From assembly GCA_002269645.1 (NCBI GenBank), contig NIVC01002128.1, positions 62,001 to 126,000 of the forward strand: a stretch of 64,000 nucleotides of DNA. The letters are read 5' to 3'. This document shows positions 37,122-64,000 of the stretch, piece after piece. Made by a program: the position numbers and the translations under genes. The notes beneath the pieces were generated by a model. That model made no database searches. It was not told the origin of the DNA and saw only the letters and a program-made list of their open reading frames with translations. Position 1 is the stretch's first letter. Every line of letters starts with the position of its first letter. Source of the stretch: Macrostomum lignano (Eukaryota).

Positions 37122-37660
37122 TCAGTCAGTCAGTCAGTCAGTCAGTCAGTCAGTCAGTCAGTCAGTCAGTCAGTCAGTCAGTCAGTCAGTCAGTCAGTCA
37201 GTCAGTCAGTCAGTCAGTCAGTCAGTCAGTCAGTCAGTCAGTCAGTCAGTCAGTCAGTCAGTCAGTCAGTCAGTCAGTCAGTCAGTCAGTCAGTCAGTCA
37301 GTCAGTCAGTCAGTCAGTCAGTCAGTCAGTCAGTCAGTCAGTCAGTCAGTCAGTCAGTCAGTCAGTCAGTCAGTCAGTCAGTCAGTCAGTCAGTCAGTCG
37401 ATCAGTCAGTCAGTCGATCAGTCAGTCAGTCAGTCAGTCAGTCAGTCGATCAGTCAGTCAGTCAGTCAGTCAGTCAGTCAGTCAGTCAGTCAGTCAGTCA
37501 GTCAGTCAGTCAGTCAGTCAGTCAGTCAGTCAGTCAGTCAGTCAGTCAGTCAGTCAGTCAGTCAGTCAGTCAGTCAGTCAGTCAGTCAGTCAGTCAGTCA
37601 GTCAGTCAGTCAGTCAGTCAGTCAGTCAGTCAGTCAGTCAGTCAGTCAGTCAGTCAGTCA
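37122..37660. repeat. (GTCA)n microsatellite, about 540 bp, with rare GTCGATCA variants
   Basis: Directly visible. Confidence 0.98.
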
Positions 37661-38661: not shown

Positions 38662-39617
38662 CAGGGGCGTCGCCATAGATTTTATGATGGGGATACCAAG
38701 CCAATACACTACTTTTTTACGAGTAAATCGGTGTTGTTATCACTCACTTTGATGCGGCAGGCACTCATTTTAACGCCACAGGCACTCATTTTAGCACCGC
38801 AGACACTCATTTTAGCGCTACAGGCACTCATTTTAGCGCTACAGGCACTCATTTTAGCACCGCAGGCACTCATTTTGGCGCCAACAGGCACTCAGTTTAG
38901 CGCTACAGGCACTCATTTTAGCACCGCAGGCACTCATTTTGGCGCCAACAGGCACTCAGTTTAGCGCTACAGACACTCATTTTAGCACCGCAGGCACTCA
39001 TTTTAGCGCTACAGACACTCATTTTAGCACCGCAGGCACTCATTTTAGCGCTACAGGCACTCATTTTAGCGCTACAGGCACTCATTTTAGCACCGCAGGC
39101 ACTCATTTTGGCGCCAACAGGCACTCAGTTTAGCGCTACAGACACTCATTTTAGCACCGCAGGCACTCATTTTAGCGCTACAGACACTCATTTTAGCACC
39201 GCAGGCACTCATTTTAGCGCTACAGACACTCATTTTAGCACCGCAGGCACTCATTTTAGCACCGCAGGCACTCATTTTAGCACCGCAGGCACTCATTTTA
39301 GCACCGCAGGCACTCATTTTAGCACCGCAGACACTCATTTTAGCGCCACAGGCACTTATTTTAGCACCGCAGGCACTCATTTTAGCACCGCAGGCACTCA
39401 TTTTAGCACCACAGGCACTCATTTTAGCACCGCAGGCACTCATTTTAGCACCGCAGGCACTCATTTTAGCGCCACAGGCACTCATTTTAGTGCCCTGAAG
39501 CAAAATTACTAAAATTTCCATAGCGGGTCATAAAGGTGGGGTGGGGACAAAGCTTTGGCATGTCCCCCCCTCACAGCTTATACTAGGCTGCCCCCCCCCC
39601 CAGTGGCGGCGCCCCTG
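38662..39617. mobile_element. hAT-type MITE containing a 21-bp minisatellite
   Basis: TIRs are CAGGGGCGTCGCCA and TGGCGGCGCCCCTG (13/14). The flanks TTGACGAT and TTGGCGAT form an 8-bp TSD (7/8). An internal array of CAGGCACTCATTTTAGCACCG-type units spans about 38757-39490. Confidence 0.82.
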
Positions 39618-40485: not shown

Positions 40486-42127
40486 ATGTACTCATATCAG
40501 CTTCTAATTCTATCCTTATTTATTATCGGTAAGTATTTTATATTTACTGACATATAAACACAGAGCTCAGTGACTTGGGTTGTTCTGAAAGGATTTCAGA
40601 GGCCTCGTTAGAAATTCTATGTTAAAGTAAAGTCGGAAAAAACACACTTTTAAAGGGAAATGTACGTCGTAGAAGGGTACTACATGTATTTTGGCTAAGA
40701 TGCATGCAATAATTGTATACATGCCAATTGCTGCGCGCAAAACATCTATCTAACCCCTAGTCCTACTCTAAACTCTGTATTTCAGCTTCCTCAGTAGCTG
40801 CAGACGAGTTCAGCACACTTTCAAGACAGAAACGGGCGACATGCAGCTCCGCAGTTTGTTACAACGGTGGCACCTGCAACAACTTCACAGACAGCCCGCC
40901 CTGCCTCTGTCCGCTGCCCTACATTGCACCTTATTGCCGTGTCGCCGCAGACTACTGCTTCACCCTGCAGCCTGACAAGGGCATCACTGAGCTGCCTGTG
41001 TGCCAGAATGACGGCAACTGCACGCTGACTTACGCTGACCCATATTTTAACTGCTCTTGCTTACCTGGCTTTTATGGTAATCAATTAATTAGCATGATTT
41101 CAGCCAAATTGTTTAGGTTAATGTAAGAAATCTCCGAAATTCAGGGCTACGTTGCGAGCATGCGGAACCAATACCGGAAGCTACTACGCTACCATCTGAC
41201 GGCGGAACAAGCCCGAACTTTTCAACCGAAACAAAATCTACCGAAGTAGTCAGCACTGGCGTTGCAAGTGAGTTGATAATGATCATTACTTGTTCATGAA
41301 AAAATATTAGGCAGATTTAACTGCACTTTTAACTGACATTCAATTAAATATTCTGCAGACCTGACTACATCCGGTTGGCATGAAAGGATGGGAGTAGTGC
41401 TACTCATATCCGTCAGTGTTGGAGTCCCAATCGCCGTGGTGATAATTGCTGCCATGGCGGCTGCCATCGTTTTTGCTGCTCGTTATCGCAATCGCCAAAA
41501 GGTAAAAAAATCTATTGTACTGCTTGTACTTGCTGTTATAAGCCTGAAAGAGCCTAGAATGAGTTCCAGAATGTTATTTCCTGTGTGGTAATTCCCGCAT
41601 TGCTTACATGCTGCAATGCAGTCATTTTGCCCGACTTTTAGGCTAAAAAGAGACAAATGGAGAACAAAATTGCGCAGCTTCATCCGATTTTTAACACTTC
41701 TACCGCATCGCTTTGCAAAATTTCAAAAAAATGGTAGTTTTCTGACCATTTTGAAGCTTGTATTGAGAAATATTTATGCGAAATAGAAACTAGCGCATTC
41801 TGAAATATCAACATATTTCAGTTTAAACTTTTGTTGTGATGTCTTGACAATGTCTGCGCATATTCATCAGGCCAAAAGAAATAGAGAGTTTGTTATAATA
41901 TTCACATCATATAGTATACGTGACGATATGCGTTTTAAATGATTTTTTAAAAATACTGATTTGATCACAAAAAGTCTCCAAGAGAATATTTGAGAGGTTA
42001 TATTTATACAATATTTGCTGAGTAAAATACAATTCTCAAATGATTTCAGACCTCTCGAAGCGGCGACAGGACCAGATACGTCTGGGAAGAGGGCTGCGAA
42101 TCAGACTTCAATTCTCATGCAATCTGA
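40486..42127 (+). CDS. EGF-EGF type-I membrane protein, array gene 1 (furin-like RQKR before the EGF pair)
   Basis: Exons 40486-40528 (MYSYQLLILSLFII), 40786-41076 (EGF pair), 41145-41267 (GLRC plus Thr/Ser stalk), 41359-41501 (TM VVLLISVSVGVPIAVVIIAAMAAAIVFAA), 42050-42127 (TSRSGDRTRYVWEEGCESDFNSHAI*). Phases are consistent. Confidence 0.85.
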
Positions 42128-42850: not shown

Positions 42851-44422
42851 TAAGGGTTGCCACTCTTCTTGTGGCGTATGCAAAGGGCCAGGGGGGGGCC
42901 ACTGGTCCCGCGATCATCCGACAAAAATACCGCTCCCAGAAAACGTTGCGCTCCTCCAAAAATTAACAAAAGAGGCAGCCAAACCCGACGAAAGCCCTTA
43001 AGAGACAGGAGCGCCCACCTAAGAGACAGCAGGGGCGCCCACCTAAGAGACAGCAGGGGCGCCCACCTAAGAGACAGGGGCGCCCACCAAAGAGACAGCA
43101 GGGGCGCCCACCTAAGAGACAGGGGCGCCAACCTAAGAGACAGGGGCGCCCACCTAAGAGACAGGGGCGCCAACCTAAGAGACAGGGGCGCCCACCTAAG
43201 AGACAGGGGCGCCCACCTAAGAGACAGGGGCGCCCACCTAAGAGACAGGGGCGCCCACCTAAGAGACAGGGGCGCCCACCTAAGAGACAGCAGGGGCGCC
43301 CACCTAAGAGACAGGGGCGCCCACCAAAGAGACAGCAGGGGCGCCCACCTAAGAGACAGGGGCGCCAACCTAAGAGACAGGGGCGCCCACCTAAGAGACA
43401 GGGGCGCCAACCTAAGAGACAGGGGCGCCCACCTAAGAGACAGGGGCGCCCACCTAAGAGACAGGGGCGCCCACCTAAGAGACAGGGGCGCCCACCTAAG
43501 AGACAGGGGCGCCCACCTAAGAGACAGGGGCGCCCACCTAAGAGACAGGGGCGCCCACCTAAGAGACAGCAGGGGCGCCCACCCAAGAGACAGGGGCGCC
43601 CACCTAAGGGACAGGGGCGCCCACCTAAGAGACAGGGGCGCCCACCTAAGAGACAGGGGCGCCCACCTAAGAGACAGGGGCGCCCACCTAAGAAACAGGG
43701 GCGCCCACCTAAGAGACAGGGGCGCCCACCTAAGAGACAGCAGGGGCGCCCACCCAAGAGACAGGGGCGCCCACCTAAGAGACAGGGGCGCCCACCTAAG
43801 AGACAGGGGCGCCCACCTAAGAAACAGGGGCGCCCACCTAAGAGACAGGGGCGCCCACCTAAGAGACAGGGGCGCCCACCTATGAGACAGGGGCGCCCAC
43901 CTAAGAGACAGCAGGGGCGCCCACCTAAGAGACAGGGGCGCCCACCTAAGAGACAGCAGGGGCGGGCGGGGCGCCCACCTAAGGGACAGGGGCGCCAACC
44001 TAAGAGACAGCAGGGGCGCCCACCTAAGAGACAGGGGCGCCCACCTAAGAGACAGCAGGGGCGCCCACCTAAGAGACAGGGGCGCCCACCTAAGAGACAG
44101 GGGCGCCCACCTAAGAGACAGCAGGGGCACCCACCTAAGAGACAGGGGCGCCCACCTAAGAGACAGCAGGGGCGCCCACCTAAGAGACAGGGGCGCCCAC
44201 CTAAGAGACAGGGGCGCCCACCTAAGAGACAGCAGGGGCACCCACCTAAGAATCAGGGGCGCCCACTGAGAGATACGAGCTAATGAAAGGGCAACCCCTC
44301 AAATGAAATGACAACCCCTCAAATTAAATCACAACCCCTTAAATGAAATGACAACTCATCAAATGAGATGACAACCCTCATCAAATGAAATGACAACTCA
44401 TCAAAGGAAATGGCAACCCCTA
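42851..44422. repeat. 21/24-bp minisatellite (CAGGGGCGCCCACCTAAGAGA +/- CAG, about 43005-44270) inside a possible TIR element
   Basis: The array is directly visible. It is bounded by TAAGGGTTGCCA (42851) and TGGCAACCCCTA (44411-44422), with 20-bp AAATGAAATGACAACCCCTC subrepeats at 44310-44422. No TSD was found. Confidence 0.75.
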
Positions 44423-45819: not shown

Positions 45820-47641
45820 ATGCTTTACTCTACAAAACTGTCGCAGGATATGTTGATATTAATTTTCTTCACTCTCCTAACTGCATTCGGTAAGAATCCT
45901 GCAAAAAAACTAACGACTTTCAATGAGTTTTAACAGGTTTTAGTATATTCGATAATATTAGTCATTTGAGCTATTCTGACTAATCTTATAATAAATATGA
46001 GATCAAAATTAATGCATCTCAGGCAATGTCGAAGCAGCGAACTGCTCAACAGTCACCTGCTACAACGGCGGCACCTGCAACAACTTCACAGACAGCCCGC
46101 CCTGCCTCTGCCCGCTGCCCTACATCGCACCTTACTGCTCAGCTGCTGCAGACTACTGCTTCACACTGCAGCCTGACAAGGGCATCACTGAGCTGCCTGT
46201 GTGCCTGAATAACGGCACCTGCACTCTGGCCTACACCGATCCGTACTTTACCTGCAACTGTTCCGATGGCTACGAAGGTAAAATCAAGCCGATACTGTTT
46301 GATCAAAAAAAGTTAGGCTTCTACTTGCTTCTTCGACGTTTACTAGAATATATGGATAGTTAGTATATGGGGCTGAGTGAATGGAGCTTACAGATCTGTA
46401 CTTTAACAGTACATGACCAAATGTTTGCATAGTTTTGTCATAAGTTAGGAGGCAGAGTGGAGTGTGCACCCTGACGCACTTTAGGCGACATTGTCACACA
46501 ACCAACGAGAGGCATTACTGCTGATATCACCGACTCCCCTGAGCAGGCATACAAGCGCGCGGATACGTACGCAGTCATAAACAAGCACACACTCACACAA
46601 GAGTGCACAGCGGCCCTAATTTTATTTATCGTTAGGCATGTACACTTCATTGTGCTTTGGGGGTTGGGCCTCAAGAGCGATTCCCGATCCCACTGGAACA
46701 ATTTGTGTCCTTGAGCAAGACACTTAACTCTACATTGCTTCAGTTCCCCAGCTGTAAAATGGGTACCAGCATTTATTAACTGGTTTAATTGAGGGTGTGT
46801 GTGGCGACCCCCAAGTCCTTGGGCTGAACAGCCGTACGCAGCCTTCAGATGCGCCGCGCAATAGCTGCGGCTGAGCTGTCGGTTGCGCATCTGCCTATCG
46901 GGGCAGGTGTAATTAATTATTAGTATTATTATTATTACTAAGGTATAACATGCATTGCGCTTTAATATGTTTAGATACTCTCAAACTTCACAATCAGTTT
47001 TACAAGCCGTATTCACTAATATTCTAGGCTTTCGATGCAACGAGAGACACAAAGAAGACGACAGTAAGTGTCCCGATGAAAGTCAAATTAAAAAAATCTT
47101 CTATTGTGGCAAAAATAATAGCTACCGTTTTATTGTAATTTCAGCACTTGAATTTTCCGAGGCTTCCGTCACTGTAGGCGTCGCAGCTGCTGGCGGCACG
47201 GTCGGAGGCGTATGTATAATAGTAATCATTGTAGTAGTTTGCAAACGCAAAACAATTTGCAAGAAGCAGTCGGAAGCTCCAAGTAGCACAACAGTTACGG
47301 ATGAAACTGCCGATTCGACAACAAAATCTCACTGTCCGAGTACAGGAGCCGAAATTATTGATGAAACTGAAAATAAATATCAGCCGAATGACAACTCAAA
47401 AGCTGTCGAACTTAACAGCCAAGCAACCAATGGCACATCTCTCGGTGACACGGAAGTTGGTGGCAGCCCAGGTGGCAGAATTCCTGTGTCCGAGGAAAAC
47501 AATCCGCCAGATGCGGAAGCTGTCTACGCAGTGGTCCAGAAGAAAGCGAAAATACCTGAGTCCGAGAAAAACAATCAGCCAGATGCGGAAGCTGTCTACG
47601 CAATGCCCCAGAAGAGAGCGAAAACACCCTATGTCTTCTAA
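45820..47641 (+). CDS. EGF-EGF type-I membrane protein, array gene 2 (short stalk, long tail with duplicated EAVYA motif)
   Basis: Exons 45820-45889 (signal), 46023-46277 (EGF pair), 47028-47063 (GFRCNE), 47145-47641 (TM VGVAAAGGTVGGVCIIVIIVVVC-KRK; tail ...DAEAVYAVVQK...DAEAVYAMPQK...YVF*). Confidence 0.87.
46460..46655. repeat. Dispersed about 200-bp repeat (other copies about 55330-55530 +, about 62200-62320 -)
   Basis: Shared blocks CAAGCGCGC..ATAC.GTACGCAG.CA and TT.TAATCGT.AGGCATGTACAC. Confidence 0.55.
46655..46939 (+). mobile_element. tRNA-derived SINE, 5'-truncated, in an intron of array gene 2
   Basis: Core GTGTCCTTGAGCAAGACACTTAAC...CCCAGCTGTAAAATGGGTACC, an (ATT)n tail, and homology to the 63132-63465 copy. 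Confidence 0.7.
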
Positions 47642-49519
47642 CTTATTCAACTACTTACATATTGTCTTACGGATTACATCCTGCATACGTTGTTATTCTT
47701 GCTTGTAACGGTACACTTTCTTCTTCTCTCCGGTCTGAACTAAAAGAAGTAAAAATTTAGTAAAATTATTATTTACTATCGGTTTTTAAGGTTTTATTTT
47801 TGACCGAACGTCACATATGAAGTTTTTTAGTTGAAAATCGCTTCACATTGAACTCTTTGTAAATAATTGACTCATTTTTTATTCCAATTAATGAAAAAGT
47901 TTTTCATTTTTTGAATAATTTTCCATATTATAACAAATGTCCTGTGATATATTCAATTTATTTTAATCGCTACCCTACATGTATACAAGGACCACTAGGA
48001 ACACTTCGTTCTAGATAGTCTAGTAGTCCTTGCATTTGACTATAATTAGTAGAAGAACAATAAATGTTACCCGTAACTTATCTAACACCGTAACTTTTTG
48101 TTTCATAATTAATCTAGTATGTACCGATGACATCATGACTCTGTATATGTTCCATGATATATGATTCGACACCAATATACTGATCGAATCAAAGCTGTTG
48201 TTGGTATGACGTCTTGAACTCACTAAAGAGACAGCGCACCTGCTCAAAAGTGTGGCTACAGATCCTTCGTGCCGGGTCTGTTATAGGAGGTTGTTGCACG
48301 GCGCTTGGCTTTTAAACCCCCAAGTTGTGCTTTATTAGCGATTTCGCTTAACTGCTCAAGTTGTATTCTCGTATTTCTTGTATTTCTCACAACTTTTAAC
48401 TCCTGATGCAAAATATACTACTCGTCGTGCCAGGTGGCTTATTCCTTGTAGTCGCTGTCCTTCACGTTCTGTTGTTTCTGTCTTCGTCACCTCATCTAAC
48501 CTCTAAATGAAGCATTTTTCGTGACAGAGTCCTGGACAGACTAATCATGGCGTTAAATTCGAGTCTCAGCTCGAAGGAAGTCTCGAGAAACAATGAAAAA
48601 CGATTCAAAGATTACAAAGAAGATGAAAGGGTCATGTTGCAATAATATGCCTGCCAGATTGCTTGAAATTATTTGCTTCTTCTTTCAAGAACTTCTTTGT
48701 TTTGAGTGCTTTGGAAAGGATTTTACATCATGATTAAAAATTAATTCATAAACTTGACTTAATTCTCAGTATATCAGCACTGGACCTCCGAATTCTAAAC
48801 AAAACAGGCATGTTTCCCGCTCGAAGTGCACAAGTTCCCGCGAAATTCAACTGCTGCTGTCTCTTCAGTGTACTTTTAGTTGCTTTGCAAAACATCAAAT
48901 CCTTGCGAACTCCTTTTAGAAAACACGAATGTTTAATAATAATATTTCAAACATTTTCTCGACAAAATTGTAACAACACGCATGCTTTATTCATTTAGTC
49001 GAAAGTCCAGACAGTGAGACAGTGAAAGTTAGCTCGTAGCTTCGTAGTACGAAAATTTGAAAACTTCCTATCTCGCTAATGTATTTTGCAGGAGTTTAAC
49101 GAACTTCAGGTTTGTTATCCATGCTCTGCCACTAAGAGCTGAGTTCTACTTATTATTCACGAGTTCGGCATCTTTTTAGTAGCTGAGTTGGCAAAACTAT
49201 GCTTGCGTACAAAGTACTGCATTCTGTTCGACTGAAAACCCAGACCGAGCCCTAGCCTTGCGGATTTGTGTCTCGAGTAAAAGCGAGAATGTGTGCACCC
49301 AGCCCTACTTATGAGATTCTTATCCTGGTATTTCAACTCTGCACCTGCCATTGTGCCAGCCAACTAGGCTATGCGCTCGTTAAAGAATACAAAAATGGTA
49401 GCCATTTTCTGCAGTTCGTGCAATGCAATTTTCCTACTCAAAAAGAGAATGTAAGCAAGACCTGGCTATTTGCCAGCTACTTATATTTTTGCTGCGCGAA
49501 GGCTCATACTAGATTAACA

Positions 49520-52178
49520 ATGGCTGCGGCAAAACTCTGCATAGCACTGACCGTCATGTTGACTTTCTGCTCAAGTGAGGCCTTTTGAAAAAACTTTCTG
49601 ATCACTCTTTTGGCATTCCACTTTAATAGACAAGTAAAACCCTATTCAACTGATTGCAGCAGCATCACAAGCTGCCAACTGCTCAGCAATCACCTGCTTC
49701 AACGGCGGCACCTGCAACAACTTCACAGACAGCCCGCCCTGCCTCTGCCCGCTGCCCTACATCGCACCGTACTGCGAATCAGCAGCAGACTACTGCTTCA
49801 CCCTGCAGCCTGACAAGGGCATCACTGAGCTGCCTGTGTGCCTGAATGGCGGCAACTGCACTCTGACCTATACTGATCCCTATTTCAATTGCACCTGCCC
49901 ACCTGAGTCCACAGGTTCGGTTGAAATATTTTGTATCGAGAAACATTACATATGCTTTTCTATCTTACTTGTACACTGGATTACACCTTTAGCTGCTCAT
50001 GTAGTTTTGAGTATGACCAAAACGAGTTTCGGTCATACTCTGTACGTGAACTCGAAATCAAAGCATTAAAATATATACGGCTCGTAATTTCATATTTACG
50101 GTTTTCAGATCCGCGCTGTGAAATTGATAATTCAACAATTGAAACAACAATTGACACAGAAACAGCGACTAACCCATACACGGGCACAGTAGCTGCTGGA
50201 GACTCAGCTAATGAGACATCATCATCTTTATCAGCAACAACAGAAGCCTCAACGAGCGATATTTTAACACCTGCTGAAACAACATCTGATTATCAAACAC
50301 CTGGTGCAGCAACACCTGATGCAACAACAGCTTTTCTAGGAACATCTGATGCCTCAACATCTGATGATTCAACACCTGGTGAAATAGCAACTGCTCCATC
50401 AACACCTGATGCACTAACACCTGTTTCACCAACACTTGATCTCGCGACAACTTTTGCTTTGACGCCTGGTACAACAAAACCTGATGATTCAACACCTAGT
50501 GCAACAACACTTGATGATTCAGCATCTGGTCCAACAACACTTGCTGATTCAACACCTGGTGCAACAACACCTGATGTTTTAACACCTGGTGCAACAGCAG
50601 CTGATGTTTCAACACCTGGTGCAACAGCACCTGATGTTTCAACACCTGGTCCAACAGCAGCTGATGCAACAACTGATGCAACAGCAGCTTCAACAACACC
50701 TGATGCAACAACTGATGCAACAGCAGCTTCAACAACACCTGATGCAACAACTGATCCAACAGCTGCTTCAACAACACCTGATGCAACAACTGATGCAACA
50801 GCAGCTTCAACAACACCTGATGCAACAACTGATCCAACAGCTGCTTTAACAACACCTGATGCAACAACTGATGCAACAGCTGCTTTAACAACACCTGATG
50901 CAACAACTGATGCAACAGCAGCTTCAACAACACCTGATGCAACAACTGATCCAACAGCTGCTTCAACAACACCTGATGCAACTACATCTGCTCTAGCAAC
51001 TCCTGCTCAGTCTGCATCTACTGCCCTGCCAACTGTTTCAGCAACGACAGAATCAGCCACAGATTTTTCATCGATACCGACTCAATTAAAATCAACCACC
51101 GTAGAGTCACCTGTGTATAGCACCGCTTCAACGGTTCAAGCAGTTTCGACGTCTCCAGTGATTTCTTCAACACTTGCATCTACAAGCGAGAGTTCTGAAA
51201 TGCCGACTCTTTCCCCAGCGACTGCGGCATCGACAGCATCAATCGCGAATTCTTATACAACACCGGTTCCACTGACAGACCTTACATCACATTCAACGAC
51301 AGTAGTGAAAGATTCAACAACAGCCCCTCCGACTTCAACAGCAACCACGGTGCCGTCAGTTAGCACCGAGTCAATGCCTCCAGTAGTTGAGTTAACATCG
51401 TCGTGGTCAGAAGCGACGACTAAATCAACAATTACTAGTTCTACAAGTGATTCGCCTACTTCAAAAGTTGTCATGTCAACTGCCAGGCCAAGAAGTAAGT
51501 CGTTCAACAGATGTATGATGCTGATACTGGCATAAAGTTAGGGGAAATAGTGCCTAAATCAAACCCAGTTTATTTCGTGACATTTCTTGCCTGCAGCCGA
51601 TTCGTTTGGTAATGAAAGGATTTTTATATGCTACTACAGTTTTTCCTCCCTGTTGAAATCGGTTAGATAGAACTGGGGGTTCTGTATCAAACTATCTAGC
51701 TGGCATTTATGCTTATTATTAAAAGACATTTAGGATTTTTAACGGGTTAAATGATGGAGTATAACGTATTATTATGGTACACTGTACTTGTCACGTTGTC
51801 AAACTGTCATGAGAGACAATCGTCCCCCCTAGTAGTTCAGATGACGCTCAGCGCTGAATAATAATTCCAAACTCACACTTCTCTAGGCATCAAAGCATCA
51901 ACCATGAGGGAGGACGTCGGGCTGATGATTGTCAGCGTTTTTCTTCCGTTAGTGTTGGTGACGGTCACCCTGTTTATCGCTGCGATATACAATTTTGTGT
52001 CAATGAATAGTTCCACGGCTCCACGGCAGCCCAGGGTAATTTATATTATGGTAAATATATATTTCTCTTTTTGGTTCAAGAACTAACTTTTTTCTAATTT
52101 TGCTTTCAGATTCAAGAGAACATGCCATGGTCACACTACGTATATGGAAGTCCGAGCAGCTCATCGCAACTTTATTAG
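49520..52178 (+). CDS. EGF-EGF mucin-stalk type-I membrane protein, array gene 3
   Basis: Exons 49520-49574 (MAAAKLCIALTVMLTFCS), 49660-49914 (EGF pair), 50109-51494 (462-codon Thr/Ser/Pro/Ala-rich exon with 10-aa and 13-aa repeats), 51887-52035 (TM VGLMIVSVFLPLVLVTVTLFIAAIY), 52110-52178 (...SSQLY*). Confidence 0.88.
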
Positions 52179-52769
52179 TAATCCACTTTTGATGACAACG
52201 TGGTGAAGACTGCTACAATACGCTAGCAACACATGTTTCCTATTCAAAATTTGTCTAGATTGTTTTTCTATAATTTACTATGCATAGATTCGCCTTCATA
52301 AAATAAAATAAAATAAATACACAGTTTGGTATTTTATCCATGATATTCTCTGCTTTATCTGTAAACCCTGGTGTATTACAAGCAACCCCCCTAACTCAGC
52401 TCTAGCGACTAGCGCATATATGTACACTTGCAACTCACTACAATAGTAATCTTAATAGAAACCAATTAGCTCATTAAACTACCCATTCGTATGTTCGCGA
52501 CATCAAGGACTTTTTCAAGACTCCCCAGGAAACCCTGCGTCACCTGTAGTACCGAAATTTGTGCCATGGTGGCTCCAAGCATAGAAACGCTGAATGATAA
52601 AGATGGTATCCAGCTAAACGATTACTTTAATCTCATAAAGATGCTAAGGTAAACGTTTTTCGGAACTTCTAGTAAATGCCGAAGGCAAACAGCAACAAAA
52701 ATACGCAGATAGTTTAGGTATTAAGAAATACTGAAGCAGAATTGTCACGACTTTTAGGCTAGGCTACGA

Positions 52770-53080
52770 CCGAATTCAAGACGCCGGCGCCAGTCTGTCG
52801 GCGTCGGTAGGGTGCCTGCATAATCAGCAGCAGCACCTTACGCACCGGATGTGGGCAGTACAATTCAGCGCGGATGATGTGCCCTGCCAGCTTGAATTAC
52901 TGGAAAGCACAAAATGTCACTTTGAACGGACCAGGCCGGCGGGGTGATGGAATGGCGCAAAAGTATCTCGCTCATCGCCGATCATGTAAGCAGATCCAGG
53001 TCCGTCAGTGTCAACATCTTGGCTTTGTAGAGCAGTAGGGTATCGACCACCGACCTCTGGCGGTTGGGTAGGAGCTCCAC
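52770..53080 (-). mobile_element. Third fragment of the same non-LTR family (C-terminal region)
   Basis: The minus strand reads KLAGHIIRAELYCPHPVRKVLLLIMQAPYRRRQ, matching AGHLICAESYCPQPVEEVLLLTLHAPYRRGQ at about 35600-35690. Confidence 0.65.
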
Positions 53081-53779
53081 AACTACCATAGAGAAGAGAA
53101 GCAATTTTTAGAGTTGCCACCGAGGTAAAGTTTCGAACCGATGTAGATTTCAAAGAAAAAGCTCTGGTACGCATTGCAACAGACAAAAAATGATAGTTCC
53201 ACCCCAGCACGCTGCATTATACTCATACTTGCAAATACCAGATATACATTTGCTAAGGTGAGTCCATTTATGGCCAAAATCAATTTTCTAGACTGTATCA
53301 TAACAGTAAAATTCATGCCAGTGACTTTCGAGCTGAAAAGGTTTTAAGTTTTTGTTGGGGGGGGGGTCTCGCGGTCAGAGAAATTTAGTGAGCATCAAAG
53401 AGAAAGAAGTTTCCGAAGCAAAATCGTGGAGACGCAGATGAATTCGCAAGAGCACAATGATGTTCTCGAGAAAAAATGTAACTCGCGTACATTTTAATAC
53501 GGCAAGCATCGCTATACATTCCTGCTGCATATTCGTCCATTTTTTTCGTCTTTTTGCAATTGTATTCATAGAAAAAACAGTCTGCAGCTCAGATATACGG
53601 TATGCTCATAAAGAGCTTGCTCACACAGAAAAACTGTTTCATTTTGGGTTGAGCGAAAGTGCGACAGTCTACAAGCTCGCAGGTACTGCATACTCGTAGT
53701 TCAAGAAGAATAAAATTACATTACAGGGATTCGCACCATTTTTATCTGAGCTTAAGCCGTCTTTTCCAAAGAATTGAAA

Positions 53780-54789
53780 ATGACAGCACTGCAGTTAATT
53801 CGCATTGCCGGCAGTCTGCATGTTTTATCATCTTTTGCAATTGGTAAGTTAAGCCAAGCAGCTTCTTCATAATACTTCTTTGCAGAATAAAACAATCGAA
53901 TTCTTGAATTTCACTTCTTTCACATTCGTAGAAAAGCATTGCTGCAACTAACTGAATTTTCACAGTTACTGTGTGATAAAAGCTTGCCAAAAAATGAAGA
54001 TGATAAAATTTGCAGCACCAACTCAGGCTGCGAACTGCTCAACTGTCACCTGCGACAACGGCGGCACCTGCAACAACTTTACAGTCAGCCCGCCCTGCCT
54101 CTGCCCGCTGCCCTACATCGCACCATACTGCCGATCTGCTGCAGACTACTGCTTCACCCTGCAGCCTGACAAGGGCATCACAGAGCTGCCTGTGTGCCTG
54201 AATGACGGCAACTGCACTCTGACTTACACCGATCCGTACTTTAACTGCAGCTGCCCTACCGGTTATACTGGTAAAACTTTTTTTAAATATTTTCATATTG
54301 CAAAATTCGGTTAATGCACAAAATCTCCATTAAAAATTTCTTTAAACTTTTTCACCTCTTACTAAGGCACTAGATGTAGTGATAAAGTTTGGAATGCAGA
54401 ATCCAACGATCCAACGAATCCAACCTACTGCCTCTACGATTGCGGTAATCAATTGTGCCATAAAATAAAAAATTTTTGCCATTTTCAATTTTTTAAAGTT
54501 GAAAAGCTCATGTCATGCTCCTTATTCTTAATCTCCTCAAGACAGCGGCCTGACTACAACCAGTAAGGTAGTGATTGGTGTGTGCGCACCTGTTCTGTTC
54601 ATCATCATCGGCAGCTTTTTTCTCTATATGTACCCAGCCGGAAGAACTGAGGTGAGTTTTGAGAATGAAAATTTGCGATTGTCTTTTTCTTCCATTTATT
54701 AGCTAGCATCGTCTCACCTCTTACTGTTACAGAAGGTTACAGACCCTAAAGGGGAACAGAACGCAAAGTCACGCGGCTGCGGGTGCTGA
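53780..54789 (+). CDS. EGF-EGF type-I membrane protein, array gene 4 (compact; tail ends in GCGC*)
   Basis: Exons 53780-53843 (signal), 54016-54270 (EGF pair), 54367-54444 (GTRC...YCLYDC), 54542-54651 (TM VVIGVCAPVLFIIIGSFFLYMY), 54733-54789 (KVTDPKGEQNAKSRGCGC*). Phases are consistent. Confidence 0.8.
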
Positions 54790-56093
54790 TGCTGCTGGCG
54801 CTGCTTCAGCTGAAAAATCAGTAAAACTCTGTCGCGATTGACTTTATGAGGATTTTGAGTTTTTTAAAAATAATGTAATGCAATCGAAGTACTGCACAGA
54901 GTACTCAGTCTGGCTTGGCGAACCCGTGAGGCAGGGTCGACCGTGGACAAAATCAATAAACGGTCTCCTCTTTCTGACTTTGATTTTACTGTCGCTAAAA
55001 AGCCCTTCGGACTGATTTCTTACCTGAATTTTCTTTAGAATTAACGTCTCAGAAACAACGCGACTGCTTTTCTTTAAAGCAAATGCAAGCATTGAGTAGT
55101 TGGTAAAGAACAGACCATTTTGGCAAGAGTTTCTAAGGCAGTTAAAATCACGAGCCTATCCATTTTAAATGTGCATACGGTATATAAATGAAAACTTAAA
55201 AAATCTGAGGTATTGTACTTGAATCACTCTTGTAAGTTTCTACAGCAGTTATTTTAATCCAGTCTTAACCAGACTACAATATCGATGGAAATTAATCGAA
55301 ACCAAGAGACCCAATGACGCGTGCATGTTCTAGGTCTGCATTGCTTAAAATTCTGATTGAGGACACCCTTGCCACAAGCAGCATTGAGCCAATTCTGCCC
55401 ACTCCGCTGACTCCTGAGCACATGCAAGCGCGCCAATACTGTACGCAGGCACGCACTCATGCACACATAGGGTGTACACCGGTCCTGACTTTCTAATCGT
55501 CAGGCATGTACACTCTCTGTTTCGTAGTTGGGGGGTCGTCAGACCTGTTTTCCAGTGAGCTGATCAGTCCCCTCCTATACGGCTTGACGATTTCTTAAAA
55601 ATTATTTTTTCCGTAATCCTGTTGGTTACTACTGTCGGTCCGATGCTACCAAGTGTGTCTTTTTTACTAGAGCGTACATGCTATGCCTTTAATTCTGTTT
55701 CTTATTCTGTCTCTCTCTCTCTCCAAGCATCAACGATGCTAAAGTACAGCAGCGCAGCAAAGTAAAGATAAAATAGCCTGTTAGTTTATTGCTCATCCAA
55801 TGCGGAGCCAGCAGATTGTCCATGGAGCAGTATGGAATAACGCTCGGGTTAGGGTAATTTTAAACATAACGCACAATTTTAGAACTGCACGTACAGTGTG
55901 ACTCAGGATGAAGTGTCTATTGACAAAATGTCTATTTTTACAGAAGGATGCCACAATGTAAGAAATAGAGAAAAATAGTAAACGAGATTAGGAAAGAAAG
56001 TAAGGTAGAGTTGGTTGCGAACTTAACGAGCTTCATTTTATAAACAAATTTATAAAAATTATCTACTGTAAAAACTGGTAGTATATGTAAAGC

Positions 56094-57548
<1,455 letters not shown>

Positions 57549-58061
57549 GTTGTTTCAAGCTACACCTGGGCGTATTGGCGTAGAAATTCACGCCAGCAAC
57601 TCTAATAGCAACTTGTTTGATCGACTCTCGGCGATTTACAATAATCTAGTATCAGTACATGATCTACGTTCGTATTACCACTTTGCTACTGAGCACACGC
57701 GCTAGATGCTTTGATATTTTTTACCATTTTCTGAAAATCCAAAATATCTCTACAATTCGGCAAGGCATTCTATTTTCATTGCGTCTGATCTCTATTGTTT
57801 TATGTATTGATTCACTACTCAAGCCAGTAAGACATGCGCATTGAATGTTTTCCGTTTTTTCAGAGGATTAACGCCCTAAACTAGATTGTAGCCAATGACC
57901 AAGAGAGATGAACAATCGTGTAGCTACCAGTACACTAAAACAGTACATATAGATATCCGGATTTCATTTTAAGCGATTCCAAATAGCTTGTGTTTCCTGG
58001 TTATAACAATCTTCCTGCGTTTTCAATTGCTATTCTCTGGGCAATACGGGCCAAGTCAGAT

Positions 58062-59412
58062 ATGTCTACTGTTTCCAATGGGACTAAAATATGTCTACTG
58101 TTTCTGTACTTAGCTGGTAAGCATGTTTCTCTGCTGCGATTTTATTCATAAGTACATTTATTCATGCAACCATTCAGCCTTATTTGTAGGACTCTATTTT
58201 CTTACTAATTCATTCGCAGCGCCATCACAAGCTGCGAACTGCTCAACAGTCACCTGCCACAACGGCGGCACCTGCAACAACTACACAGCCAGCCCGCCCT
58301 GCCTCTGCCCGCTGCCCTACATCGCACCGTACTGCGAATCAGCAGCAGACTACTGCTTCACCCTGCAGCCTGACAAGGGCATCAATGAGCTGCCTGTGTG
58401 CCTGAATGACGGCAACTGCACTCTGACCTATACTGATCCCTATTTCAATTGCACCTGCCCACCTGAGTACACAGGTTTGTATTAGTTAGGTTTAAATATC
58501 AGCAAACGTTTCATTCTAACGCAAGTACTTTTTTATGAACGAATTGTTCAGGAAATCGTTGCAACGAAACCGTGACAACCCCTGATGACACTACTTCGAG
58601 TCAATCGACATCAACACCAGAATCGTCTGCTACAACCGGGACAACGGCACCAACGTCGACTGCTACAGCTGGGACATCATCACAGACATCGACTGCTACA
58701 GCTGGGACATCAGCACCGACATCGACTGCTACAGCTGGGACATCATCACAGACATCGACTGCTACAGCTGGGACATCATCACAGACATCGACTGCTACAG
58801 CTGGGACATCATCACCGACATCGACTGCTACAGCTGGGACATCATCACCGACATCGACTGCTACAGCTGGGACATCAGCACAGACATCGACTGCTACAGC
58901 TGGGACATCAGCACAGACATCGACTGCTACAGCTGGGACATCATCACCGACATCGACTGCTACAGCTGGGACATCATCACCGACATCGACTGCTACAGCT
59001 GGGACAACGGCACCAACATCGACTGCTACAACTGAGACTGCACTACCAACAACGACAGAACTAGACTTAGAAAATGCTGCCGACACTGCAACCGGTGGGA
59101 TTACTATTTATGATTTCGAAAAAAATCTTTTCAGTCTTTACGTAGGCCGTAAAGAAAATGTTTTAAAATGCCTTGATCTAACCGTGTTAATGCTGCAGGG
59201 TGTAGGTGGGCTTAAAACGAATAGAGTTGAAAAAATTTATTGGTGCAAATTAAAACTGGTTAGCTCGATTAAGAAATTCCGAACACACCTGAACTTCCTT
59301 AGATTTGTGTCGGCAAACAGTGGCTATCGGTGCGACATTCGTTCTGCTGCTCAGGTTGTACTAGCATTTACTATTTGGAAATGGCAGTTTTGAAATCAGC
59401 TGTTGCTATAAG
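58062..59412 (+). CDS. EGF-EGF mucin-stalk protein, array gene 6 (TM-like exon disrupted)
   Basis: Exons 58062-58116 (MSTVSNGTKICLLFLYLA), 58220-58474 (EGF pair), 58552-59094 (GNRC plus 36-bp TSTATAGTSSPT repeats). A candidate TM exon at 59303-59412 (TVAIGATFVLLL...) has an in-frame TAG at 59362. Confidence 0.75.
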
Positions 59413-60617
59413 GTGAGAAGCGATTTCGCATTTTCTGCGTTTTGTAATCAAGATCTGTTTAATTGGTTGTATCCTCATAAAGTGCAGGTGTTCTGCTTTT
59501 GGGATTTAAAAAATACCACAGATTTAAGAAAACTGATCGAACCATAGATAACATCGATTCTCTTAACATTGAAACAGTTTTGAATTCAAACCCTCTATTT
59601 CAGAGTATCGACATCGGCTGTGATAATTGCCACAAGTTTGATGGGCTGATTGTCAAAGTGGACGGCATCGCTTGGTGTACCAAAGCCTTTAAAGTATCTT
59701 GAGAATGTTTCAGAAAGATGTACCTAAATTAATAAACTTTCAAGTTCTTATCTACTGCATATTTGGGTCTGGATTCGAAATCCAGCATTTTATAGTGCAA
59801 AATTTGTGCGGTAAATTTGATTATGATCTTCTGACCTTTTTAGCCAACTTGTCAGATAAAGTTATGAGTAAGCCTCTAAAATGCTTTTGTCTGTTTACAC
59901 TGTAGACCTAAACTAATTTTGTTGTTTTTCTGCGCTTGTATTCAACTGAATAAACGGATCGCGTTTCTCATTTTAAGTCGAGCACTTTTTTGCATTCGTT
60001 GCTACTTGTTTTGGACAGAAAGTGCAGGATACAAGGCATAGTCACAGAACTGAAATATTTACATGCATTAAACATTATTTCAAATGTTGCATAATTCTAT
60101 GTAGATCTAGAATAGCTCTACTCAGGTATCAATGTTCATTCTCTGGTGTTGTTTCCCGGGATAGATTGGGGCGAATGTGAGCATGAAAAGAAGGAAGTTT
60201 TGGATCAAAGAAGCACTGAGTGCGAAGTGTGCACTGTGGGGAGAGGAGAGAAGAGACGAAGTGAAATGAAGTGTTGGCTGAATGACCAAATGAACGCACC
60301 ATTGAAGTGCAGTGAGAGAGTTGATAAGGGTAAGAAGAAGTCAAGGTAAGAAAGTACACTAGAGAGAAGGAGACAGCTAAGCTGGGAAATAAATCAGTGC
60401 TTCTCAATCAGAATCCTAAAGAAGGATCTTGAAATATTCAATAGCAGTAATTAAAAGAACGCTTGCTTAGCTACCTACTTTTACGTGAAGGATGCTGCTA
60501 ATATCGCAGAATTCCAAATACAAAAGGTTCAGTGTGCGAGTATTCACTGAGAAGGACAACAAGTACGGTTTACACAGTAAAGGATACGTGAGTCACTCTT
60601 TGCGCGGAGAAGCATCA

Positions 60618-61138
60618 ATGATGGCAATGGCTTGCATTCTACTGTCACTAATAGGTGAGTGACAGAGTCCCAGAAATCGTCAACAATAAAGGTTTGCAGG
60701 AAATCTTGTAAGAACTTTAGTTTTTAAACAACCTCGTTTCAGCTCAAACTGAGGCTGTGAACTGCTCAACAGTCACCTGCTACAACGGCGGCACCTGCAA
60801 CAACTTTACAGCCAGCCCGCCCTGCCTCTGCCCGCTGCCCTACATCGCACCGTACTGCGAATCAGCTGCAGACTACTGCTTCACCCTGCAGCCTGACAAG
60901 GGCATCACTGAGCTGCCTGTGTGCCAGAATGGCGGCACCTGCACTCTGGCGTACACCGATCCGTACTTTACCTGTAGCTGTACAGGCCGTTATACAGGTA
61001 ATATATCTGAAACAGTAGCACTTCCTCTGTTTAGTAGAAAATTGGTCTTAAAAATCGATTGAATAAATTCAGGAACCCGTTGCCATTTGGAAACTGCTCG
61101 TCTATCGAACCAAAACTCGACAGCGGTTCCCGGATTAA
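60618..61138 (+). CDS. EGF-EGF protein, array gene 7 (3' exons not identified)
   Basis: Exons 60618-60654 (MMAMACILLSLI), 60743-60997 (EGF pair), 61073-61138 (GTRCHLETARLSNQNSTAVPGL). No convincing downstream TM exon was found. Confidence 0.75.
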
Positions 61139-62399
61139 GTAAGTAGAATTGGTTACTCAGCGACTTGAGCGCTGAGTTCTGTAACTAAAGCGCTGCTTGC
61201 AAATTGCAGGTGTGATGTCACCAACCCTGCTAACTGGAATCTCTTTTTCCGGCATGTGGCTTTTGAGATAAATCGCAAATCGCAATACGAGCTCATGTTG
61301 CTTGCCGGATAAACTTCTACTTAACGAATCGAAGACAAAAAGCAGATACTGTACATCATTTCGCACGCTGATACATGTATTTTCTCGTCTCATCTCCTAC
61401 AGAGAAGTATATTGATGTCATAAAGTTTATTTGATTTGACATATTCTACTTTCATATTTTCATACATGAATGTGCTGTGCTCTTTTTCAATGTTTTTCTC
61501 GCTTAGGTATTTACTGTGGGCTGAATCAAACAGTACAAATTCACACAACAATAAAGCTATTTTTGTCCAGCTCAGCTAAATAACGCATGGTAGAAAAAAG
61601 CATCAAGTAACTCAAAGCTATTTGAGAGCGTCCCACTGTCCCATTGCTCTCGGTGAGTTTCCTTTACTGAAACTTGGCTTGTAAATTATCACCACAATAA
61701 ACGCGTCAAATACTTTCCCAGAGAGGCAACTTTCTGTGAGAGCGTTCGGTTTTATAACGCTTTTCGCTTTGCAAACTTGTTCAGATGAAGTCTGCAGTCT
61801 GCGGTAAACTTCTATTGAGACAAATTAACGGCTGTTTTATTCATTTTTATGTCAGAAAACTGGAACAAAACAACTTCTAATAAAATTAAAGATAAAGTTT
61901 GCTGCAACGGAAATCTTCAGTATTCCAGAAAGAAAGAGATTTGAATGAGAAATATTAGCCGACAGGCAACTCCAATCCAGAAGACATAGTGGACAAGTTA
62001 GCTAACAAAAATGCAAATGCGTTGCCTTCAATCAAATTGCTTGTACAATTATAGGAACCCAAATATAGAAACAGCCTAATTTTTTGCTAAGCCAGCTGAC
62101 AGCAGATTTTATGCAGATATAGCAGCAATGGGCTACACGATTTAATGGCGAGAAATGCTTCCGTAGAACAAAATTTACAATTTTACAATTTTACGTAGAA
62201 CAATTTTTCAAGGACAACACCCAGGGTACACAGAATGTGCATGTCTGACCTATTAGAAAATCAGGGTCGCTGTACACCCTGTGTAAGCCTGTGTATGAGT
62301 GCATGACTGCGTTCAGTATTGGTGCTCTTATATGTTCTCAGAAGTCAGCGAAATGGCCTCAGCGCTAGTTATAAGACGATGTCACCGAAGTATTTGCGC

Positions 62400-63124
62400 C
62401 AGGGTGCCCGTAAATCCTCCTGCGAATATGATTATTAGTACATTATTACGAGCCAATGCCTTGTCCCACCCACCTCACCTTGTGACTCATTGTGGTAATC
62501 AATCATTTTTCTTTAGAGCGCCAAAATATAGCACATTTGGCGCCCAAAGGAGTGCCTGTGGCGCCCAAATGAGTGCCTGTGGCGCCCAAATGAGTGCCTG
62601 TGGCGCCAAAAGGCGTGACTGCGGCTCTAAAAGGAATGCTTGCGGTGCCAAAATGAGTGCCTGCAGCGCCAAAATGAGTGCCTGCGGCGCCAAAAGGAGT
62701 GCCTGCGGCGCTAAAAGGAATGCCTGCGGCGCCAACAAGAGTGCCTGCGCCGCCCTAAAGGAGTGTTTGCGGCGCCCAAATGAGTGCCTGTGGCGCCCAA
62801 ATGAGTGCCTGTGGCGCCAAAAGGCGTGACTGCGGCTCTAAAAGGAATGCTTGCGGTGCCAAAATGAGTGCCTGCAGCGCCAAAATGAGTGCCTGCGCGC
62901 CAAAAGGAGTGCCTGCGGCGCTAAAAGGAATGCCTGCGGCGCCAACAAGAGTGCCTGCGCCGCCCTAAAGGAGTGTTTGCGGCGCCAAAATGAGTGCCTG
63001 TGGCACCAAAATGAGCGCTGACAATACGATTCTCAAAACAGTGGAAATGTAGGAATTTAGTCATGTACATGTTGAATTCTTGGCTTTGTCGGCCCCAACC
63101 ATAAAATCAATGGGGACGCCAGTG
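62400..63124 (-). mobile_element. Second, older member of the minisatellite-bearing hAT MITE family, in reverse orientation
   Basis: Array of GGCGCCCAAATGAGTGCCTGT-type units at about 62530-63017 (reverse complement of the 38.8-kb unit). The end CCATAAAATCAATGGGGACGCCAGTG (to 63124) matches the reverse complement of 38662-38690. The left end is degenerate. Confidence 0.65.
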
Positions 63125-63131
63125 AGCCAAG

Positions 63132-63465
63132 AACAACAATAATAATATAATAATTGATTACACCTGCCTTAATGCAGGGCAGATGTGCAACCGACAGCTC
63201 AGCCAGAGCTATTGCACAGCGCATCTGAAAGCTGCATAAGGCTGTTCAGTCCAAGGACTGGGAGGTCGCCACACACACCCTCAATTACACCACAGCTAAT
63301 GCTGGCATCCATTTTACAGCTGTGGGTGAACTGAAGCAATGCAGAGTTAAGTGTCCTGCTCAAGGACACAAATCGTTCCAGTTAAGATCGGGAGTTGAAC
63401 CCCCGACCAGTGGTGAGAGCGGGAGTCCCAGCCAGACAAGTAGGTTTACAGCTACGGAAACCGGC
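63132..63465 (-). mobile_element. tRNA-derived SINE, near full length
   Basis: Minus strand: tRNA-like head with B-box GGTTCAACTCCC, core GTGTCCTTGAGCAGGACACTTAAC...CAGCTGTAAAATGG, and an (ATT)n tail. Homologous to 46655-46939. Confidence 0.72.
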
Positions 63466-64000
63466 AGTGCGGGTAAAAAGCTACATGTATTGTTGGATTA
63501 GTCAGTCTTCAAACTCATATGGCTCGCACGAACAATAAATTTTTGCCAAAAACATCGTTAAAAATAACCTCACTCTCAGAAACCATCCGGGTTTGACGGG
63601 GTAAAAAGTGAGTTTACTGCTTTGCTTTTTGCCTACCCATTTAGAAGAGAAAAGCTGCTCACGGGAGGAGGCTGAATGAATGACTGAGCATAGTGAGCAC
63701 GATTGTACGCCTAGGGAGAGAAAAGGGAACTTCGGTGTACAGGGATCGTTTGAGAGTACAATTGTACAGCCAGGTACGCTGTGGAGTAGACTGTTTATTC
63801 CTTGTCGGGCAGGATTTTCACGTGATTTTTAAAGTCGTCTAGCAACTGAGGGAAGATAATTAATTACCAGTGCGGGACCGCTCAACTGCAGCTGGATGCT
63901 CGCTTTTTTATTGTCGCAACTGTTTCCGTTGCTAAGGGAGACCTAAAAGTACCAGGCAGAGTGAGCGGAGTATAGCTTACATCGGATCTAGAACGCACCA

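Follow-up and report, generated by a model that had tools for sequence, protein, structure and literature searches.

Probable short-tract gene conversion confined to the core of one EGF exon in seven tandem genes of Macrostomum lignano

The DNA analysed here, hereafter called the window, comprises 64,000 nucleotides of the flatworm Macrostomum lignano (assembly GCA_002269645.1, contig NIVC01002128.1, positions 62,001 to 126,000 of the forward strand), and all positions given below are counted from its first letter. In this window, seven copies of a unit of about 262 nt are found on the plus strand, starting at 40818, 46019, 49656, 54012, 56416, 58216, and 60739; they are linked within 20 kb, are 76–95% identical to each other over the whole unit, and are the only ones that tblastn recovered in the window, with no eighth or further copy beyond them. 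Each unit has AG...GT borders and a single open frame, and corresponds to a phase 1-1 exon of about 255 nt that codes for about 85 residues with two cysteine patterns similar to those of epidermal growth factor (EGF). An initial annotation of this locus had proposed that the sequence variants of this EGF exon form a mosaic produced by ongoing gene conversion limited to the exon, over a range (46023–60997) that extends from the first base of the gene 2 exon to the last base of the gene 7 exon; gene 1, with its exon at 40795–41076, lies upstream of that range. The present work concerns the seven exons, their counterparts in two additional cluster copies of the same assembly, and the probable exchange of short tracts between them.

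The gene structures were obtained by placing the annotated and UniRef protein models on the window by tblastn. The seven exons belong to seven separate genes with a common plan, namely, a signal-peptide exon followed by the EGF exon, then an exon opening with the motif x-R-C and running into a stalk, then an exon for a transmembrane (TM) or C-terminal hydrophobic segment, and a tail. The second EGF module receives its last cysteine from the x-R-C exon and also carries an insertion of about 10 residues (LQPDKGITELPV); that exon then continues as a Ser/Thr-rich stalk. These stalks vary between genes in length and in repeat type, from about ten residues in gene 2 up to about 450 residues of mucin-like repeats in gene 3, and the tails are unrelated from gene to gene. 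The EGF exon product scores below the Pfam cut-offs, with 23.4 bits for hEGF (PF12661, cut-off 29.3) and 18.6 bits for EGF (PF00008, cut-off 21.5); its closest solved structures are the EGF repeats of Notch1 (E 1e-5), the UniRef label for the proteins is “EGF-like domain-containing”, and their close relatives in the protein database searches came from M. lignano only. The first EGF module of all copies has the pattern C-x4-T-C, e.g., in the exon product at 58237–58476, and this pattern between the second and third cysteines is the O-fucosylation consensus. The window is best explained as holding an old tandem family of seven genes for small, putative type-I membrane glycoproteins. An Rfam scan of the window gave no match.

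All of the exons described next lie on the plus strand. The EGF exon of gene 1 (40795..41076; phase 1-1, AG...GT), matched at 98% identity by UniRef model P0012 in tblastn, is the most divergent copy and has an extended 5' end that encodes AADEFSTLSRQKR; a furin-like site, RQKR, stands directly before its EGF module. Gene 2 is annotated as PAA60643.1 (BOX15_Mlig017144g1; 45820–47641), and its EGF exon (46023..46277) is matched 100% by model P0013, while its TM and cytoplasmic exon (47147..47641), which shares no DNA similarity with any other tail of the family, contains a duplicated motif of 72 nt (..DAEAVYAVVQKK.. / ..DAEAVYAMPQKR..), read as ..AVYAVV.. and ..AVYAMP... The annotated gene 3 (49421–52178) codes for 670 amino acids with a signal peptide, the EGF exon (49660..49914), a long mucin-like stalk, and a TM segment, and the exon of its stalk (50100..51535, with approximate boundaries) is made of repeats of 15, 30, and 39 nt. 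Gene 4 (annotated at 53780–54789, 187 amino acids) has its EGF exon at 54016..54270. In gene 5, the signal-peptide exon (MTINLHLNTFISLLVCLLIAGWFV-G; 56094..56166) is matched by P0009 at 88% identity, the EGF exon (56416..56673) is a mosaic that resembles genes 3, 6, and 7 in its 5' and central parts and gene 4 in its 3' part, and the stalk/TM exon lies at 57111..57241. Compared with its intact sister PAA70917.1, gene 5 shows two frame changes within 56416–57545, a 1-bp deletion near 56650 and a second shift at about 57174 in the stalk/TM exon; on the window contig, this gene is, therefore, either a pseudogene or affected by local indel errors of the assembly. An intron of gene 5 also holds a (CTGT)n microsatellite of about 226 nt (56861–57086). 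The EGF exon of gene 6 (58220..58474) is similar to gene 5 of the same contig in about the first 40 nt of its core and to gene 3 in the remainder; it is followed by a mucin-like stalk exon (58560..59093, 5' boundary approximate) with 33-nt repeats (TSTATAGTS..) and by a last exon (59293–59361) that codes for a short hydrophobic tail, ..TVAIGATFVLLLRLY, without a cytoplasmic domain, so that the gene 6 product may be glycosylphosphatidylinositol-anchored rather than TM, unlike those predicted for genes 1, 2, 4, and 5. The EGF exon of gene 7 is found at 60743..60997.

Outside the EGF exon, a blastn self-comparison of the region from 36 to 64 kb at word size 9 found no similarity between the units, and the alignments between units stop no farther than about 12 nt from the splice sites. 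In parallel, the flanks of 200 nt gave Smith-Waterman scores like those of shuffled sequence in nearly all pairs of genes, with only three marginal short matches (downstream of genes 1 and 4, downstream of genes 5 and 6, and upstream of genes 1 and 3), and this is still the case for the flanks of genes 3 and 6, whose exons differ by seven non-synonymous and zero synonymous changes. The proposal that exchange is limited to this exon is, thus, borne out, given that the similarity ends near the splice sites and that the introns cannot be aligned. Within the exon, the divergence is very uneven. Without gene 1, the mean synonymous p-distance is 0.080 in codons 1–50 versus 0.506 in codons 51–73, several gene pairs are saturated (0.70–0.78) in the last 23 codons, and the third positions are variable in 7 of the first 50 codons versus 14 of the last 23 (p 1.4e-4). 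A core of roughly 180 nt is, on the other hand, held at roughly 90–98% identity. Between gene groups, the synonymous sites in the 3' end of the exon have reached saturation, so the EGF family is old, an age that fits the unalignable introns. The G+C content at third codon positions (GC3) falls from 0.79 in the core to 0.57 in the 3' part of the exon, and the remaining exons of these genes have 0.46, with a G+C content of 0.39 in the flanks. The converted zone was, then, correctly placed inside the exon, but it does not occupy the entire exon; it is limited to the core of about 180 nt, and the last 67 nt or so are specific to each paralog. Taking gene 3 as the example, the homogenised core in which exchange takes place covers 49677..49855 on the plus strand (alignment columns of about 22–200), and in the other units it runs from start+21 to start+199 (for the starts 46019, 54012, 58216, and 60739), with about 3 nt less for 40818 and 56416. 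Codons 1–50 of the synonymous comparison fall inside this interval, and codons 51–73 are located directly 3' of it.

It was the sharing of short motifs between the copies that the initial annotation had put forward as its evidence, and the five sharings quoted are all present as stated and occur zero times in shuffled sequence. Thus, AACTTCACAGACAGC is exact in genes 1–3 only, TGCAGCTGCCCTACCGGTTATACTG in genes 4 and 5 only, and GGCACCTGCACTCTGGCNTACACCGATCCGTACTTTACCTG in genes 2 and 7 only, and gene 6 has both TGCCAC and AACTACACAGCC in common with gene 5, together with 3' 70 nt in common with gene 3. The recombination tests were carried out on an unambiguous core alignment of 221 nt with 57 variable and 33 informative sites, in which 175 of the 528 pairs of informative sites are incompatible. 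The permutation test of the pairwise homoplasy index (PHI) gave p values of 1e-4 to 3e-4 with all seven copies and also without gene 1, with neighbouring sites being less incompatible than under a permuted site order. The longest identical run, evaluated in the style of GENECONV, joins genes 5 and 6 over columns 3–87 (global p 0.031), and a single-breakpoint triplet test describes gene 5 as gene-6-like in its 5' part and gene-4-like in its 3' part, with an exact p of 1.2e-5 (Bonferroni 0.0026 for 210 triplets). Neighbour-joining trees of the 5' half group genes 5 and 6 (78%), and those of the 3' half group genes 3 and 6 (100%), genes 4 and 5 (98%), and genes 2 and 7 (70%). With a significant PHI test and separate half trees in conflict, the groupings do not fit a single tree, as had been claimed. 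Gene 5, rather than gene 6, is the strongest mosaic of the window: the sharings of gene 6 exist, but its mosaic depends on three non-synonymous sites and taken alone is non-significant after correction (exact p 6.8e-4, to be multiplied by 210 triplets). Similarly, the sharing between genes 2 and 7 is real, but by itself it is no evidence of recombination.

The most convincing data were obtained from two further copies of the cluster. The genome of M. lignano DV1 contains about three diverged copies of its sequence, with a rate of single-nucleotide polymorphisms (SNPs) of 2.2% overall and 1.1% in coding regions (PMC10733133). We designate the window contig, whose deposited sequence around PAA60643.1 is 100% identical to window positions 35820–57641, as copy A; copy B (NIVC01000070.1) is colinear with window positions 48747–63992, and copy C (NIVC01001196.1) with 46678–60719, all three being found in the same Mlig_3_7 assembly, so that the comparison is made between three copies within one assembly and not between species. 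The match of copy C to the window stops at 60719, a short distance ahead of gene 7, and a fifth EGF exon was not found in this copy. A total of 16 EGF exons were aligned across A, B, and C, and each is named here by its gene and copy (g5A, g5B, and so on). The identity between the cluster copies ranges from 86% to 99% along their length and changes abruptly: A and B are 99% identical around gene 7 and 87–91% identical around genes 5 and 6, and B and C are 98.8% identical around genes 5 and 6 and 87–92% identical around gene 4. From these abrupt shifts along the locus, it follows that the genome copies also recombine with each other on the kilobase scale.

In the last 67 nt or so of the exon, the three copies have the same sequence for genes 3, 4, 6, and 7, except for one site in g4C, and gene 5 of the window contig has five differences from its two sisters there. 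Outside gene 5, the differences between the cluster copies are confined to the first 190 nt of the exon, with the one gene 4 exception. In the exon core, the differences between counterparts are grouped into patches, every version of which equals the sequence of another paralog. Thus, g5A has GAATCAGCT where g5B and g5C have TCAGCTGCT, which is the sequence of g2A, and the CCGTACTGCGAATCAGCT that g5A has in common with genes 3, 6, and 7 corresponds in g5B and g5C to CCTTACTGCTCAGCTGCT, the version of gene 2, with five differences within 13 nt separating g5A from g5B/C. In gene 6, g6A has TGCCAC..AACTACACAGCC, as in g5A, and g6B/C have TAC..AACTTCACAGACAGTCCACCC; g7B has AGTCCACCC, which is otherwise private, in common with g6B/C; and g4C contains CCAGAATGGCGGCAC, specific to gene 7, plus the AAC of g3B/C. 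The gene-5-like 5' patch of gene 6 is, therefore, missing from the sisters g6B and g6C, as expected if genes 5 and 6 of the window contig exchanged sequence recently, and the His codon at column 43 is a private derived state common to g5 and g6 of that contig. Among the privately shared states, those shared on the same contig outnumber those shared across contigs by 10 to 2 in site counts, or by about 4 to 1 in independent events. The variation of the core between the copies is concentrated in a few loops, namely, C[YHDF]NGG, NN[FY]T[DVAN]S, YC[ES/RS/SA/RV], DK[GN]I[TNS][ED], and C[LQ]N[GDN]G[NT]C, and several of the variable residues produce the gain or loss of N-glycosylation sequons (NNFT/NNYT, DKGIT/DKNIT, and GNCT/GTCT).

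The counts of differences point in the same direction. Between A and B, gene 4 has 9 differences in 190 core positions versus 0 in 497 positions upstream (p 8e-6), gene 7 has 6 in 190 core positions versus 3 in 1003 flanking positions (p 8e-4), and when genes 3, 4, and 7, which are the pairs with the most similar flanks, are pooled, the core has more differences than the flanks and introns (p 6e-6). In genes 5 and 6, the flanks themselves are 4–15% divergent, and no contrast between core and flanks was found. Counterparts have diverged by 7% at synonymous sites, or several times the coding SNP rate given above. Of the 53 sites at which counterparts vary, 36 have only states that occur in other paralogs as well, versus 9.1 expected under a uniform point-mutation null, i.e., with uniform mutability assumed (P 4e-16). 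Furthermore, the tree of the core gives the monophyly of counterparts a support of 0% for gene 4, 5% for gene 5, and 1% for gene 6, grouping instead g5A with g6A (66%), g6B and g6C with g7B (60%), and g2A with g5B and g5C, and the tree of the 3' part recovers gene 7 (100%), genes 3 plus 6 (99.8%), and genes 4 plus 5 (92%). This loss of positional orthology in the core, which extends over genes 4–7, is the classical signature of concerted evolution, and here, it is confined to the core. Some of the mosaic exons are also found in UniRef proteins derived from the independently built ML2 assembly, with P0003 being exactly g4C and P0007 being g5B/C plus g6B/C; ML2 was built from the same PacBio data and is, thus, not fully independent.

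Most likely, all of these features are the result of recurrent interlocus gene conversion of short tracts between the paralogs, limited by homology to the exon core. The exchange would be a recurrent, non-reciprocal recombination in which one gene receives a patch copied from another at each event, with tracts no shorter than 13 nt and no longer than about 170 nt, as estimated from the patches and their nearest discriminating sites. Such events would start and end only where the copies are still alike, and since exchange needs homology on both sides, it would be confined to the core and stop at the diverged edges of the exon and at the introns. The core would, in this way, be a self-maintaining island, aided by purifying selection on the EGF fold: in the long term, the events would homogenise the core, and in the short term, they would generate mosaic exons and new differences among the three cluster copies. 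That short tracts both shuffle and homogenise the exon, as the initial annotation held, agrees with the paralog-matching patches, with the excess of core over flank differences in genes 3, 4, and 7, and with the broken positional orthology. Its word “ongoing” holds in the sense that exchange took place after the three genome copies diverged, as seen from the patches that differ between copies, and nothing more recent is implied. The raised GC3 of the core fits a possible GC-biased repair; in the one case that is clear by inspection, g7B from g6B, there are one AT-to-GC and three GC-to-AT changes. The gene anatomy, the incompatible sites, the synonymous contrast inside the exon, and the patches that match paralogs between cluster copies are direct results, and it is the repair pathway, the tract lengths, and the GC bias that we infer, together with the adaptive value and the biological role of the proteins.

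We suggest weighing against short-tract conversion several features of the data. PHI restricted to third codon positions is non-significant (p 0.2–0.47, 17 sites), and with all positions, it weakens to p 0.03–0.13 once genes 1 and 5 are dropped; because of these two results, the window data alone make the exchange suggestive and fall short of proof, and the recombination signal within the window leans on amino-acid-changing sites. The kilobase-scale recombination among the three cluster copies complicates the polarisation of events. Some of the paralog-matching differences could also be recurrent selected substitutions, given that the same few codons vary in dispersed members of the family. 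Carried to its extreme, this would mean no exchange at all, with the core held by constraint on the protein and on its codons or nucleotides, and with the mosaics being parallel substitutions at a few hypervariable codons under selection. The informative 5' sites of the window are indeed mostly non-synonymous (Y/H/D/F, F/Y, D/V/A, ES/RS/SA, L/Q, G/D/N, and N/T), and the changes that toggle sequons (DKGIT/DKNIT and GNCT/GTCT) are a plausible target of selection. However, the multi-nucleotide patches, synonymous positions included, copy another paralog exactly (g5B/C equals g2A over 13 nt); constraint predicts fewer differences in the core than in the introns, and the pooled A–B comparison of genes 3, 4, and 7 shows more; the synonymous divergence of counterparts is far above that of the average coding sequence; and the same amino acids are encoded without codon bias in the 3' part of the exon. 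For these reasons, we regard this explanation as quite improbable. Somewhat better placed, although still unlikely in our view, is an explanation from the assembly, in which the deep similarity of the exons is real, and the fine-scale mosaics (gene 5, gene 6, and the patches between copies) come from misplaced polishing reads or from a chimeric long-read consensus. The Mlig_3_7 assembly was made with Canu from PacBio reads and polished by Pilon with Illumina reads mapped by Bowtie2 and RNA-seq reads mapped by STAR (PMC5730564), the RNA-seq polishing touches exons only, and 93% of genomic read pairs map to multiple places in this genome (PMC10733133), so polishing errors restricted to similar exons are conceivable; the same contig contains a perfect palindrome of 4.4 kb, typical of a long-read artefact, and the two frame changes of gene 5 are potential indel errors. 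Against all this, donor reads match their own locus perfectly and have 4–6 mismatches at the supposed recipient (g6B versus g7B, columns 69–81), which makes their misplacement unlikely; the patches include private states of two or three copies, not the majority state expected from polishing; the ML2-derived proteins repeat g4C, g5B/C, and g6B/C, from shared raw data, however; and neither the six-fold synonymous contrast within the exon nor the unalignable introns would be explained.

Two other explanations concern the arrangement of the exons, and we consider both rejected. A recent duplication, exon shuffling, or unequal crossing-over within the exon, without repeated non-reciprocal exchange, would account for the synonymous identity of genes 3 and 6 over the whole exon, for the phase 1-1 exon, which is of the type compatible with shuffling, and for gene 5 being situated between its “parents”, genes 4 and 6. 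A crossover product should join the upstream flank of one parent to the downstream flank of the other, and a copied exon should bring intron sequence with it; no parental flank is, however, recognisable where the similarity ends, about 12 nt from the splice sites; the exon is also not self-contained, since the second EGF module runs into the next, unshared exon with its x-R-C, and the saturation of the 3' end points to an old family. It is, thus, on the missing parental flanks and on the module that extends into an unshared exon that we ruled out unequal crossover and exon shuffling, which seem to us very improbable. Hardly credible at all is the reading of the seven exons as mutually exclusive alternative cassettes of a single gene, in the manner of a Dscam-like array, even with their common phase, size, and strand, their spacing of 1.8–5.2 kb, and the fact that the ML2-derived model P0007 merges the exons of genes 5 and 6. 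Every EGF exon has its own signal-peptide exon upstream and its own stalk/TM exons downstream, and there are separate annotated genes (PAA60643.1, the sisters PAA91826.1 for gene 6 and PAA70917.1 for gene 5, and unnamed calls), so that the gene models rule out this kind of array.

The remainder of the window contains several repeats and other elements. The palindrome already referred to is a perfect inverted repeat (12472–16851 and 16921–21299) with arms of about 4.4 kb that are 100% complementary and a spacer of 69 nt, recorded as two pairs that abut, and it may be an assembly artefact rather than biology, since exact palindromes in PacBio/Canu contigs often come from chimeric reads with missed adapters. 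A satellite array of 21-nt units, together with its adjacent sequence, occurs twice in opposite orientation at about 77–85% identity (38758–39490 and 62539–63015, as well as 46682–46936 versus 63135–63393 and 55399–55520 versus 62228–62356), flanking the gene cluster, and it is probably a repeat-bearing transposable element rather than a component of the EGF genes. Another array of 21-nt units is located between genes 1 and 2 (42999–44273) with a G+C content of 0.67, a higher-order period of 171 nt, and a strong AT skew, which the annotated gene 2 model leaves out. We considered these three 21-nt arrays as possible mucin domains and rejected this, because they lie outside the annotated models, and the first and third represent a single satellite in opposite orientations. 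Upstream of the cluster, an open reading frame (ORF) of 258 amino acids on the plus strand (29468–30244) is similar to a CUB domain (..CNWQISVSPGKQVIAWF..YDRVTLYDG..VRFTTDGSVRYHGFRMRY..); a distant family member, P0016, named CUB domain-containing protein, carries the same EGF module near its C-terminal hydrophobic segment, and since P0016 joins this name with this module, the ORF may be a related gene. Another plus-strand ORF (10270–10836) is possibly retrotransposon gag-like, as judged by eye, and there are also an array of 16-nt repeats (132–601; CCCTGCTGCTCCTCCG), a GA-rich tract of 1.3 kb (27251–28588), and a (TCAG)n microsatellite of 540 nt (37122–37660). These last elements fit the repeat-rich genome described for M. 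lignano.

Regarding the proteins, the EGF modules resemble the Notch/Delta type of EGF repeats in their cysteine spacing and in the C-x4-T-C of the first module, and they differ from it in their sub-threshold Pfam scores, the insertion of about 10 residues, and the last cysteine located on the next exon. Regarding the exchange, conversion limited to one domain is found in the paired receptors of vertebrates, i.e., in the ligand-binding exons of SIGLEC11/16, CEACAM, and KIR genes. As in these receptors, an exon for an extracellular domain is nearly identical among neighbouring genes whose TM and cytoplasmic parts are unrelated; the differences are that the present genes are those of a flatworm and that an EGF pair takes the place of the Ig domain, and no canonical tyrosine-based inhibitory or activation motif (ITIM/ITAM) was seen in the tails of the EGF genes by eye, with no motif search made, nor was any activating/inhibitory dichotomy found. 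Pseudogenes also work as donors in conversion, as in the pseudo-V genes of the chicken Ig locus and in the conversion of CYP21A2 by CYP21A1P, and in a similar way, gene 5 with its changed frame shares the His codon at column 43 and the 5' patch with the intact gene 6, so that a disabled copy may take part in the exchange; in contrast to those systems, the frame changes of gene 5 are possibly assembly errors, and its sister copies are intact. It is tempting to think of a recognition-receptor system that uses micro-conversion, in which a shared EGF head, placed on genes with differing stalks and tails, would be continually re-assorted at five or six surface loops and at N-glycan sequons, with disabled copies as donors. 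We consider this speculative and rather unlikely, and if true, it would make these genes a flatworm analogue of the vertebrate paired receptors or of pseudogene-templated diversification, with a role in immunity or in the recognition of gametes or partners in a promiscuous hermaphrodite.

The closest comparison is with interlocus gene conversion in general, of which the globin and opsin genes are the classic cases, together with their concerted evolution, and the present locus is a clear yet ordinary case of this well-known process. What they have in common is the linkage of the paralogs, the short non-reciprocal tracts, the mosaic sites, and the exchange limited by homology, together with the low silent divergence of the converted segment beside saturation and the raised GC at silent sites. 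Interlocus conversion has been surveyed in mammalian gene pairs (PMC2720389) and in Caenorhabditis paralogs (PMC3966223), and a model of “mosaic divergence” has been put forward for tandem paralogues (bioRxiv 10.1101/2025.10.29.685298). Our literature search for gene conversion in M. lignano found nothing relevant. In practice, the similarity of the exon core is no guide to orthology in the EGF family, and cross-reaction through the core is expected in short-read mapping, RNA-seq quantification, RNA interference, and CRISPR targeting, so specific reagents should be directed to the paralog-specific 3' 67 nt or to the tails. What sets the present locus apart is the unusually small size of the island, about 180 nt in a single exon, and the fact that this island is the sole DNA similarity remaining among the seven genes, which means that homology-limited conversion can keep such a short island alike for a long time in genes otherwise diverged beyond recognition. 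It also differs from the known cases in that its three cluster copies allow a direct reading of the events after triplication, and with most M. lignano loci present in three copies, such events become directly countable, making this lophotrochozoan convenient for measuring how often interlocus conversion occurs, how long its tracts are, and how far it is GC-biased.

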